64,000 nt of DNA, taken from NCBI GenBank assembly GCA_964035545.1, contig OZ037766.1:23986126-24050125 (forward strand). Reading direction: 5' to 3'. This DNA is from Bugula neritina. Taxonomy: Eukaryota > Animalia > Bryozoa. Below are positions 14,801-42,334 of this stretch, in pieces. The position numbers and the translations under genes were made by a program. Positions within the stretch are counted from its first letter, which is position 1. The number at the start of each line of letters is the position of its first letter. The notes beneath the pieces are model-generated. The model was not told where the DNA came from. It saw nothing but the letters and a program-made list of their open reading frames with translations, and did not search any database.

Positions 14801-17800
14801 CATAAAGAAATACCTACACTTTGTTTTTGTAGTTTCGGTCTCAATTATAAGCTAACCATGCTTGTTGTAAAGTATGTATAATGCCGTAAAGGTTTCTGAC
14901 TTTTTAGTGTGTGCATGGAAGCCTTTTATCACAATAATTGACAAAAATCAGGTGGACTTATCTCAATGACAAGACAATTATTGTTGCCTTTATGATTTAA
15001 CTATAAGAACGGACTTTATGTTGTTTCACTTACAATTTACAAACTCAATTAGTTCAAATGAAAACTACAATTTTTCAAAAATGTGTGATGTAGTTACAAA
15101 AATCACATTTAATATACCAAAGCAACTCAACTACATTTTAGGGTGTGAGTGCAATAATCATGCGAGCAGTTGCCATTTTGATCCCGCTGTCTACCACGCC
15201 TCGGGAAACGTCAGCGGAGGTGTTTGTGATAATTGTCTGCATAACACTGCTGGCCTCAACTGTGAGGCTTGCAGACCTGGCTTTTACCAAGACCCAGTGA
15301 AGGATTTGAAAGACAGATATATATGTCAGCGTGAGTGAATCACAATATCATAGCATTCGACTACTGATATATTATCGCATTATTCTCGCATTGTTATATA
15401 ACGTATTATTATATTTTATTACATTATATTATGTTATGTTATCTTATTTTATATTATATTGTCTTTTATTCTATTTTCTTGTATTATTGTAAGTTATATA
15501 AGAGTGTATTATATTGTGTTATAATTTATTATATTATAATATATTATGTTATAATCTTTTATATCGTATTATATTATTTTACAATATATTATATTATGCT
15601 TTTTAAATTATATTATATTATATATGGTAGTTCTTCTAGACCAAGCAGCTACATGTCACCGAATAAGCATTTTTAGCAAAAAATCTAAATGGAGGAATTA
15701 TAGTGAAATCACATTAATCGTAGACAGGCAAAAAAGATGTCTTAACTTCCAACGTTTGAACTTGTCCATATAATCTGTGAACTATATAATTGAAGCTCTA
15801 TATATGTGATGTTGTAGCATGTAACTGCAGCTTGTTAGGTGTAGACCCAAACTCCGTGGAGCCATGTAATGAACGAAATGGACAATGCATGTGTTTACCT
15901 AATGTGGTTGGCAGATCATGTGACCAATGTTTGCAAAATCATTGGGGGTTGGCAAGTGGTGCAGGTTGTCTGCCATGCATGTGTAGCCATGAAGGAAGTT
16001 CTTCTTTGCAGTGCAATGAGGTTGATGGACAATGTTCATGCAGAGCCGGATGGAGTGGAAGGCAGTGTGATCATGGTATGCTTTTACACCAGAGTGCTTA
16101 AATAATTCATATACGTATATAATATGATATTTAAAGTGTATTATATTATATAATGACGTGTATTCTATGAATTTGTTTATTTGCTACTTGTAGTAGTTTA
16201 AAAAAAAACTTGAGCAATTTTTTTTTAAATATACAATAAGTTTTCACAAAAACTCACGAACTATTAATTTTAATTCCTTTTTATAAGCTAAAACAATGCA
16301 TATTTTAATCATTATATGTGTGTATGTATATTACAGTCTTATACTTTTTTAGTTATGGAACGGTTAAATAGTTCTTGTCCACATCAAAATCTTACTGGCT
16401 ACTTGATTCCGGGACAAACAAAGGTCAAGGTCAAGCTGCTCGATGACTTTTTTGGTGTTTTGGCAGAAGGAGTTCATCAATTTGTCAACTTATATGATTC
16501 TGAAGAGTGCATTTATTTTGCCAACATTATGAGTGAGTCAATTAGTTGAACACTGCTTTGTAGTAACTTCTCATTAGTGCAATGAGTCATGAGTTATACA
16601 GCTTTTAATACACCCTATACTCATATTTGACAGTGTAACAACTATAAGAGCATCATTATGCATTGGCATGTATACTGGTTACGAATTTATAGTGATATAT
16701 TTGTTATTACCTTCTACCAAGGGGATATAATTTCTTGCTACTGTATTTTACCATCTTTAGGAATATCTCAATAGTTTTTGAAATTTTTTATATGGTTGCT
16801 TTTAAGCCCCTTTACATACCACATCCAAAAGAAACTGCAGGTGTTACAAAATGTTTTTAATTTAGTTGAGTAGTAATAAATAAAAACACAATTGCTTGTG
16901 ATGTGCAAATACTGTGCAAAATTTTGTTTACTTGCATAAATTTTCTGTTTGCTTACACTTGAATATATTGTTTGTATCGACATAGACTCACCAATACTTA
17001 GAAGACTGACGTTCAAAGCTAGCTATGATGATGTGCCATGTCATTTAACTGTGAATTTATTTAGCGTGGTTTCTATAATCAGAGCTTTAAAGAATCAGAT
17101 TGATAACTTTCAAGAAGTTTGCAACAATGGTAAGTTACTCTTTTCAAGATAAAACTTTATTACTCTTATTTACTAAAAAGTGTTTTGAAATATTAAGGGA
17201 ATACTTTAATGCTTATATAAACATATAAAATATTATTTAGACTGTCACATGTCTACTGAGATGTCACCTTCATATGAATGTCAAAGAAATGTGCTGACAG
17301 TCTATTGGCCAACTGACAATGTGTACTCTGTTGACACAAAGGAAGTTCCTGGTGACCTGAGAGTTACTCTGAGAGAGAGGCTGGTTGATCACGAGACAAC
17401 ATATTCGGAGATTAGGGTTCCGATTCTTACCCAAACGTAAGTAGAGCGTAATACTGATAACATTACACAATAGTGTAATGTTATATAGTACAGTGTAATA
17501 ATAATGGTGTAATGTAAGTATAGTGTAATGATAGTACTAATGTAATGCATGTACAGTGCAATGGCGTAAATACTTATATCATGTATAGATATAGTGTCAT
17601 GGTAATACTAGTGTAATGTAATTGTGATGTAATGATAACAATAAAGTAATGCAAGTATAACAATGTAATAATAATGCTAATGTAATATCATTACAGCTGG
17701 GTACAATGTTAAAACTTTAGTTAATTAGCAGGGAATCAGCAGTTTATTAAATTTAATATAAAAAAGCTTGAAAAGTTTTTTCACAGTTCATGCTGTTAGT

Positions 17801-18130
17801 TTCTTTATTTTTTTAGCAAGTTGCCTGTTTGTATAACTTTTTATTAATTCTAATGTGTTTAATGGAAACTATATTTTCATTATCATGATTATTTTAGGTT
17901 GTGATTCTACCAGCGGTATTTGCATTTTTCAAGGGATATACCAGGTTTATAATGTAAAAAGGTTTTAGTCTTGCATGCTGATAATAGAATTTAGTTGTGG
18001 TGCTTTTTATTCTGTTTACAGTGTTAAGGCAAGAAAAAATGTAAAAGGAGAAACGATACAACTGATACTCCGCTCAACCTGTGCTGATCACACCATGACA
18101 TATGACCCTATCAGTGATGTCTGTCGCTAA
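11870..18130 (+). CDS. LAMB1-like: Laminin beta-derived secreted protein, about 692 aa: signal peptide, LN domain, LE1, LE2, two distal-type LE repeats, and a ~210-aa non-laminin C-terminal module. No coiled coil.
   Basis: Exons 11870-11924, 12387-12949, 13335-13449, 14027-14175, 14534-14654, 15142-15330, 15818-16075, 16353-16532, 16986-17129, 17241-17436, 18022-18130 (2079 nt, open to TAA). Beta-LN motifs: [63 protein letters not shown]. Confidence 0.88.
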
Positions 18131-40800: not shown

Positions 40801-42334
40801 TTATTGCAATTTATTTGTAAGCAAAGGCATAGATATTTATATGCTTTGTATACAGAATAGAAGGGCAACATTTTAGTTAGACCAGCTGTATTTACAATGT
40901 TTGAGTTTATTCATGCCTATGGAACAAAAAAGTGTGATGAGTAAAGGTGTGCATTGCGATTAAAAATATGGAACAAATAGTTTTTTATTATAGTTTCACA
41001 GCAACAAAATAACTGTTTTTATGGCTTAACAACTCTCCACTCCCTTAGAGAAATTGTTGAGACCTTCGAGTTTATAAGTCGTGGTGTAAATGATGTAAAA
41101 ACAAAATATTCATAGATATGATTGGAACTAACAGCTAATATGCTCCACATTGAACACTATTATCAGCCGATTTTCCCAATTAGCTGCTAATCATTGAAAA
41201 GATTTCACATTTTAAAAAAATTAGGAAGCTTCAGTAGTACTACCTCGCGTGCAGCATGCTTCAAGTATGTAAAAACAAGCTTAATATCACATATTATGAT
41301 TTCTTGTAGAAAAGATGAGCATTTTACTACATTTTTCACGAGTTTGCAAATTGTCTTTTTAATTGCAGTAATAGACGTAGCTATTTCAGAATATCTGAAA
41401 ATTTACATTACTGCACATTTAAACCCTGGTGAAAAGGTTGCCAAAGTACAACTATTAGAAGACTTTGAAGGAGTTTTGCCCACCGGAAACTTTACGTTTA
41501 CTAAAGCATCGAACCCTCAAAAGTCTCAGATCTATGTTGAGGTTTTAAGTAAGTTTGTTTAGAAACTGCAAAATTTAATTTATTGCTTATAAATGTATAT
41601 TTAATATGTAAATTTGTTCATAACATATTTGTAAGGGTTTGACAATCTGTTGCCTTAAACTATGCTGCGTGCCTTGTAATTTTAGAGTCACCTATTGCGA
41701 GAAGGTTGGTGTTTAAAGCTAATTATCATGTCCCATGTCACCTGATAAAAAACGCATTTAACAGAGGATCCTTAAAAAATTCTTTACGACAACAAGTAGA
41801 CCGTCTGCAGCAAATCTGCATCAATGGTAAAACTTTAAATCATTAAAATAACAAAGTTGCCGCTAATTACAAAGATGCTGTCGTTTAAAAGGGACTAATC
41901 TGTTGATGTAATTCTTGATCTTATTTAGACTGTCACATGTCTACTGAGATGTCACCTTCATATGAATGTGACAGAAATGTGCTGACAGTCTATTGGCCAA
42001 CTGACAATGTGTACTCTGTTGACACAAAGGAAGTTCCTGGTGACTTGAGAGTTACTCTGAGAGAGAGGCTGGTTGATCATGAGACAACATATTCGGAGAT
42101 TATAATGTCAACTTTTTCCAAACCGTAAGCAAGTACTGGCGCTTCACATATCTGTGGCATCTCATGTTTCAACTTACAATTTTTTGCATGACATTTATGA
42201 GATCTTTTTTACTTGTTTGAAGTGTAGTTAAAGCAAAGAAAAATGACAAAGGGGAAGCCCTGCAATTGGTGCTCATCTCAACCTGCGTTGATGAAACGTT
42301 GACTTATGACACAGAAAATGATGTCTGCATGTAA
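37832..42334 (+). CDS. Secreted NHL-repeat (beta-propeller) protein with the same C-terminal module as the laminin-beta-like gene; in-frame TGA in exon 2 (possible null allele or pseudogene)
   Basis: Exons 37832-37861, 39327-39382, 39889-40742, 41369-41548, 41686-41826, 41929-42124, 42223-42334 (1569 nt). Signal peptide [24 protein letters not shown] motifs [24 protein letters not shown] and [38 protein letters not shown] at 39360-39362. Confidence 0.8.
38738..38777 (+). ncRNA. Minimal Penelope-type hammerhead ribozyme
   Basis: tact CTGAAGA t gggtac-agtg-gtaccc GAAA ta TC agtg. Conserved core, 6-bp stem II, vestigial stem III, AUC triplet. Confidence 0.72.
38924..39079. repeat. Perfect palindrome: 76-bp arms, 4-nt loop
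   Basis: 38924-38999 is the exact reverse complement of 39004-39079. The centre is the hammerhead stem II (gggtac cact gtaccc). Confidence 0.92.

Follow-up and report, generated by a model that had tools for sequence, protein, structure and literature searches.

Why do two genes for secreted proteins with unrelated N-terminal halves end in the same four exons? The question is raised by a 64,000-nucleotide stretch of the genome of the bryozoan Bugula neritina (assembly GCA_964035545.1, contig OZ037766.1, positions 23,986,126 to 24,050,125, forward strand), hereafter called the window. One of the two genes has a head derived from laminin beta (the beta-like gene), the other an NHL-like propeller head, and a third gene at the edge of the window, derived from laminin gamma (the gamma-like gene), carries the same tail. 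According to the account that we favor, to which we assign a probability of about one half, a HYR-like domain and a SEA-like domain with a disulfide cap would derive from a HYR-Sushi-SEA-ephrin-receptor-like cassette of SVEP1 type. A large family of secreted propeller proteins in bryozoans would have acquired this module as its constant C-terminal end, and fusion at phase-1 introns would have added it to truncated duplicates of laminin beta and gamma, of FN3 and EGF proteins, and to a convertase. The tail would then act in assembly or anchoring and the laminin heads in a netrin-like manner.

A shared tail and its genomic family

In the beta-like gene the module is encoded on the plus strand by exon 1 (16353..16532, a shortened HYR-like beta domain), exon 2 (16986..17129, the predicted opening strand and first helix of the SEA-like domain, with two Cys), exon 3 (17241..17436, beta hairpin and second helix, two Cys) and exon 4 (18022..18130, the last strands, a Cys-hairpin cap and the stop codon). 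Its counterparts in the propeller gene, also on the plus strand, are located at 41369..41548, 41686..41826, 41929..42124 and 42223..42334, the last again with the stop. Exon lengths are 180/144/196/109 bp and 180/141/196/112 bp, respectively; the intron phases are 1,1,1,2 in both genes, and every intron is GT-AG. The module exons give an open frame of 208 amino acids (aa) plus stop in each gene, with 119 of 209 positions identical and six aligned Cys in exons 2-4. The original prediction that the same four exons end both genes is therefore confirmed for sizes, phases and cysteines, with exon bounds shifted by 1-2 bases. Its statement that the two modules are clearly similar also stands (shuffle z-scores of 9.2 for exon 1, 29.1 for exon 3 and 15.7 for exon 4), but the similarity is uneven. 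Identity amounts to 27% in exon 1, 52% in exon 2 and ~64% in exon 4, and the DNA of exon 3 is 97% identical across 185 bp. Measured as the proportion of differing synonymous sites (pS), divergence has reached saturation in exons 1 and 2; exon 4 has a pS of 0.54, exon 3 one of just 0.05. The likeness of exon 3 is inflated by a conversion tract (17230..17414, plus strand, 97% identical to 41918-42102), the other end of which lies in exon 3 of the propeller gene. Over the first 173 bases of this exon the beta-like gene differs from its propeller paralogue at 4 positions and from its own orthologue at 14, and four local copies cluster for exon 3 only (quick tree, support 91). As the paralogues are closer than the orthologue and the grouping is confined to this exon, we read the exon-3 likeness as recent local gene conversion.

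Instead of the three copies assumed originally, the genome holds about 90. Profiles of exon 3 and exon 2 matched 90 and 84 places in the 216-Mb genome, both of which are lower bounds. A propeller exon is present at most 6 kb upstream on the same strand in 76 of the 90 exon-3 loci, mostly in clusters on C2 and C7, as judged by matching the coordinates of two profile searches by eye. The exon order was checked in 30 loci and found to be constant. Some of the 14 non-propeller copies were read. The convertase and EGF proteins and some of the propeller proteins have no exon 1, and others have it twice, so the mobile core consists of exons 2-4; the four exons do form one unit in both window genes, as had been proposed, but the first of them is optional. 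Similarly, the laminin-derived and NHL heads named as partners are both present, although most copies of the module sit in the large propeller family and the laminin genes account for only a minority of its recipients. Other heads are FN3-like repeats at C5:1.49M and C7:2.93M (recognized by eye; one exon tested was unscored by Pfam), the P domain of a proprotein convertase at C2:31.65M, and EGF repeats in a JGI contig of another assembly. The laminin, FN3 and convertase fusions rest on exon order, while the EGF contig is intronless. At the convertase locus (C2:31.645-31.648M; L041 3051-5300) the P-domain exons lead directly into module exons 2-4, and a mariner-like transposase remnant is found upstream. 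The earlier proposal of exon shuffling is supported, the module having been placed behind unrelated heads by way of phase-1 introns.

A spliced contig, P0016 (run SRR4125604), encodes in a single frame a signal peptide, a propeller and the complete module. Its identity to one of the genes of this genome is 92%, so in this case the exons are indeed joined to the propeller head. Searching 1.84 billion representative sequences with the exon-3 profile yielded 105 matches, of which the named ones are all from B. neritina, barring a single bacterial match (P0105) that was rejected as a repeat artefact. A distant copy with the same exon layout was detected in a metagenome labelled BRYA16, which we took for that of a North Pacific plastic study (PMC5069773) although the accession was not matched; in that study bryozoans accounted for 30-90% of eukaryotic ribosomal RNA reads. 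Restriction of the module to bryozoans is likely, not proven.

Predicted fold and probable donor

A profile comparison with a genuine HYR exon (87%, P 3.8e-6; shuffles 0 and 2 of 3000), relative to which exon 1 lacks ~20 central residues, bears out the proposal that this exon encodes a shortened HYR-like domain. The Pfam HYR profile (PF02494) matched 0 of 21 exon-1 copies, and none occurs among the HYR matches in the genome. For the whole module we used the AlphaFold model of a database protein, P0002 (69 alignment rows; predicted local distance difference test, pLDDT, 93), which comprises a small all-beta domain corresponding to exon 1 and an alpha/beta domain corresponding to exons 2-4, with residues 53-186 forming a ferredoxin-like alpha/beta sandwich. 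In a wide structure search the SEA domain of MUC16 was matched with Z 5.8 and a root-mean-square deviation (rmsd) of 5.0 over 117 aligned residues, with TMPRSS6, dystroglycan and GPR126 near. The top eight matches of a second search contained the SEA domains of MUC16 and TMPRSS6 and the N-terminal region of dystroglycan (Z 5.2-5.8, rmsd 3.1-5.0, 93-117 aligned). Foldseek gave no match below E 0.001, with cadherin MAD domains weakly present, and the sole match in the Atlas was a SEA cluster (0.77). The Pfam SEA profile (PF01390) found no match at E 1 in either the exons or the full database proteins, and PDB sequence and Atlas searches for the whole module were blank. Run on single exons or on database proteins (P0002, P0016, P0063), these searches agree with the earlier statement that the module cannot be assigned to a named family. 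An NTR (C345C) identity of the tail was considered and rejected, as it has no Pfam match and the model is ferredoxin-like.

Prediction shows a ferredoxin-like fold with a Cys-hairpin cap for exons 2-4, and because the predicted fold is ferredoxin-like and the protein extracellular, kinship with SEA domains is probable. The fold and the match of exon 3 to a segment of a HYR-Sushi gene, described below, are in line with the earlier view that the remainder of the module is SEA-like and akin to SVEP1-type proteins. SEA domains typically lie beside a membrane anchor, and a Gly-Ser autocleavage motif or a furin site in the loop between strands 2 and 3 is typical of them, if not universal. With SEA and SEA-like domains (MUC16, TMPRSS6, dystroglycan, cadherin MAD) the module shares the predicted ferredoxin-like fold, the extracellular setting and a small beta-sandwich in front. 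It differs in having neither a Pfam match nor the autocleavage motif, in its four internal Cys plus Cys cap, and in its position at the extreme C-terminus of secreted proteins instead of beside the membrane: in the copies read, the stop codon follows a few residues past the last Cys. We therefore describe the module as SEA-like, a form that fails the Pfam and motif tests; our literature searches found no account of this family.

As many SEA proteins are cleaved, the tail could instead be a cleavage and release device in which a convertase cuts at Arg-Arg and frees the head. An Arg pair is near-invariant at the start of exon 2, one copy of the module is fused to a convertase, and a neighboring SVEP1-type gene has RxKR in the matching segment. 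Yet the Arg pair lies inside the first strand of the P0002 model, the strand 2-3 hairpin at which SEA domains are cut is short and carries no Gly-Ser, RxxR or furin motif in 21 aligned copies, and no membrane anchor follows the tail, leaving nothing to be released from. We regard such a role as very unlikely.

Regarding the donor, HYR genes of this genome present HYR-HYR-Sushi followed by a Cys-bracketed segment, to which the SVEP1-type ones add ephrin-receptor-like repeats. A gene of the latter type is located ~10 kb left of the window, beyond a neighboring propeller gene (C2:23956126-23976125, minus strand). This SVEP1/Polydom-type gene starts a few kb past the last module copy and encodes VWA, Sushi, two HYR, a SEA-like segment with two RxKR motifs, ephrin-receptor-like repeats, EGF and a pentraxin-like domain; human SVEP1 has likewise been drawn with a SEA module (PMC13722417). 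The segment nearest to the module was found after HYR-HYR-Sushi in an EGF-Sushi-HYR gene at C2:28.95M. The middle exon of this segment is significantly similar to exon 3 of the module (P 8.5e-5, 0/3000 shuffles), and both end on Pro with an identical phase-2 intron; the intron before the matching exon is one base off in phase from that of the module. The next exon encodes a strand and a Cys pair, and the gene appears to stop one short exon later. On this comparison the tail is likely to be a SVEP1-type cassette that was cut short inside an ephrin-receptor-like repeat, just past its first Cys pair. Common to both are the succession from HYR through a SEA-like segment to a Cys pair, significant similarity in exons 1 and 3, and one intron position. 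In contrast to the SVEP1/Polydom cassette, the module has neither a Sushi domain nor a furin loop, its HYR part is ~20 residues shorter or absent, and the chain ends after the first Cys pair and serves as a mobile tail; the window genes contain neither Sushi nor full ephrin-receptor-like repeats.

Laminin short arms and the propeller head

The beta-like gene starts with a predicted signal-peptide exon (11870..11924, plus strand; ATG, hydrophobic run and phase-1 donor, in frame) followed by head exons at 12387-12949, 13335-13449, 14027-14175, 14534-14654, 15142-15330 and 15818-16075. The head (12387..16075) comprises LN, LE1, LE2 and the third-last LE of laminin beta and, from the LE that follows there, six Cys; this second-last LE ends the head, and the mid short arm is deleted. 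Exon by exon it is 59-77% identical to laminin beta at C4:10.67M; the last head exon shows 65% identity to the distal LE exon and is shortened by a new donor. The complete model has 11 exons and 692 aa without internal stop. The gamma-like head occupies the minus strand (7698-7555, 6707-6521, 5795-5703, 5588-5434, 4659-4519, 3755-3625, 2682-2501, 1905-1717, 1138-942 and 673-508) and encodes a signal peptide, LN, four LE and the decayed start of the next LE (508..7698). Its best PDB matches are laminin gamma-1, and identity to laminin gamma at C8:9.29M is 62-78% in six exons and 39% in the last. Exon 1 of its module is at 89..262 (minus strand), exons 2-4 lie left of the window, and the model amounts to 735 aa once a dead duplicate exon is skipped. 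The two genes are arranged head to head with start codons 4.2 kb apart, while full-length laminin beta is on C4 and gamma on C8. Laminin LF/L4 profiles matched elsewhere (PF21199 on C4 only; PF00052 on C1, C2:5.67M, C3 and C8) and not in this cluster, and both window genes are devoid of the coiled-coil rod. They thus share the LN and LE exons, the intron positions and most polymerization residues with laminin beta and gamma chains, and differ from them in the missing LF/L4 domain and coiled coil.

Compared with the full-length genes, the heads show pS 0.78-0.82 and a proportion of differing nonsynonymous sites (pN) of 0.16-0.19, as expected of old duplicates kept by selection. Pseudogenes were rejected since the frames are open and under purifying selection, and an assembly artefact was rejected as the beta-like gene is present in a second, independent assembly (~86-94% DNA identity), in which its ten covered exons and their junctions are intact. 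In this second lineage (L063 4768-4884) the beta-like gene has a module exon 2 that is shorter by 27 bp, a difference that leaves the frame and both Cys intact. Between the assemblies pN/pS is 0.25 in the head and 0.36-0.51 in the tail. The junction from laminin to tail in the beta-like gene is a 277-bp GT-AG phase-1 intron, and the order of the exons points to a fusion. Laminin exons and module might also stay unjoined in mature RNA; the laminin fragments would then stop within the intron, and the module would be expressed on its own or remain silent. Consistent with this, the exon-3 profile search returned no database protein with a laminin-to-module fusion, and NCBI models include stand-alone module genes, e.g. 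P0002. Against it speak the intron just described, the lack of a signal peptide or start ahead of exon 1, the last LE, which needs a partner exon to be complete, and the persistence of the junction in the second lineage; we consider unjoined exons improbable.

Polymerization residues were mapped from published work (PMC9852560, PMC12328585). The gamma copy retains Y147, R149 and S213, while D261, an Asp in the full-length gene, is replaced by Asn. In the beta copy E204 is retained, and position 200 is Arg in both lineages and Ala in the full-length gene; Arg at this position is listed as disrupting the mammalian trimer (PMC9852560, PMC12328585). Given Asn at D261 and Arg at 200, the beta-gamma contact is probably changed, i.e. 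lost or retuned. A close architectural parallel is with netrin-4 and netrin-1, secreted proteins that likewise combine a rod-less LN-LE short arm of beta or gamma type with an unrelated six-Cys tail. In the window genes, by contrast, the tail is HYR/SEA-like and not NTR, the heads are far nearer to laminin chains than to netrins, and the LE set has four members or is internally deleted. The pair appears to be an independent re-invention of the netrin plan. As the short arm of netrin-4 blocks laminin polymerization (PMC12328585), the rod-less arms may act in a netrin-like manner: they would contact laminin LN domains or each other without forming the normal heterotrimer, and would cap, loosen or decorate the basement-membrane lattice. 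Nothing in these findings is more surprising than this head-to-head pair, in which rod-free beta and gamma short arms from two chromosomes came together, a course of events that parallels how netrin-4 and netrin-1 arose.

The propeller gene has a candidate signal-peptide exon (37832..37865, plus strand; hydrophobic run, phase 1, joining in frame) and a single-exon NHL-like head (39864..40742, plus strand), giving a model of 513 aa. The Pfam NHL profile (PF01436) matched the head with E 0.073 only, and a homologue faintly. The head is 42% identical to the head of transcript P0016, whose single-sequence fold reached pLDDT 34, and shows pN/pS 0.27 against the independent assembly.

Possible role of the tail and neighboring elements

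The tail lacks catalytic motifs, a membrane or lipid anchor and the cleavage loop of SEA domains; a few of its own motifs persist over large distances while the heads vary. Together with the nearest structural analogy, PCDH15, in which a beta-sandwich plus SEA-type domain drives dimerization (PMC7547225), this favors a non-catalytic assembly or anchoring domain, which would self-associate or bind one common extracellular partner and so set different heads into one matrix or surface layer. Alternatively, the tail may be a passive, stable terminal domain that was spread by the frequent duplication and recombination of neighboring propeller genes, supplying a ready 3' end to any truncated gene that came to lie in a cluster, with the heads functioning independently. 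Both laminin genes indeed lie inside the propeller cluster, the exon-3 conversion is local, and the tail of the gamma-like gene is a recent copy of its neighbor's (pS 0.09-0.18, introns alignable). This copy brought along a second HYR-like exon that is now dead (L031 9248-9072, minus strand), with a 4-base insertion, a premature stop, a donor changed from GT to GC and no nearby acceptor. The tail pN/pS of 0.36-0.51 fits a passive domain as well. However, the surface-type motifs RRL (exon 2) and W-x-T (exon 3) hardly vary among ~90 old copies or in other species, five or more unrelated heads were captured at distant loci, and the tail was retained over saturated synonymous distance. We consider a purely passive tail unlikely, less so than release by cleavage.

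Several observations weigh against the assembly account and its SVEP1-type donor. Constraint on the tail is weaker than on the laminin head, and the two lineages show 9 residue differences in exon 2 of the beta-like gene, which is loose for a shared interface. The Z-scores of the fold are all below 8, with an unrelated ferredoxin fold, a Cascade subunit, scoring 6.0. Finally, exons 2 and 4 alone show no significant match to candidate donor genes and are alike in layout only; a Fisher combination of the P-values of three exons was set aside, as exon 3 alone is supported by shuffling. A more far-reaching version of the assembly account appears rather unlikely to us. Here the tail would be a bryozoan-specific universal coupling domain through which ~80 propeller heads, the convertase, FN3 proteins and a co-regulated laminin pair combine; the laminin pair would dock this recognition repertoire on the colony surface or basement membrane, with the tail standing in for the laminin coiled coil and neighbors being kept compatible through conversion of exon 3. 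If the tail does couple heads, one small domain would explain how the large secreted propeller family of bryozoans is displayed. The locus presents an undescribed, apparently lineage-restricted SEA-like domain whose spread by exon shuffling can be seen in progress: relatives resembling the donor, a dead captured exon and conversion tracts can all still be read.

Between the beta-like and propeller genes we noticed old duplicated non-coding blocks (18412-19011 vs 35735-36432, and 25947-26070 vs 35600-35719), which suggest that this interval arose partly by segmental duplication. It further contains a mariner-like remnant (19686-20503) and two related Glu/Lys-rich tandem-repeat frames on the minus strand (22146-24686 and 34646-35656) with periods of 75, 150 and 450 bp, the first open over 847 aa, neither with a Pfam match. 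Cys-rich repeats of ~106 aa that end in CC-x-x-C and look ShK-like by eye are found at 31277-32281 (minus strand) and 28295-29069 (plus strand); they adjoin Thr-rich stretches and have no Pfam match, and a stop codon interrupts the plus-strand copy. An EGF_CA exon is present at 30673-30837 (minus strand). Downstream of the propeller gene, a cytidylyltransferase gene (PF01467; choline-phosphate cytidylyltransferase by motif) occupies 44000-50200 on the minus strand. A Ty3/gypsy-type retrotransposon at 58168-62670, a recent insertion with 235-bp long terminal repeats that are 99.6% identical, carries a 1318-aa frame with reverse transcriptase, RNase H and integrase. Outside the window, at C2:33.13M (L035 2082-3130, minus strand), a small Cys-rich gene with a phospholipase-A2-like CC-x-x-H-x-x-C motif lies upstream of a propeller gene.

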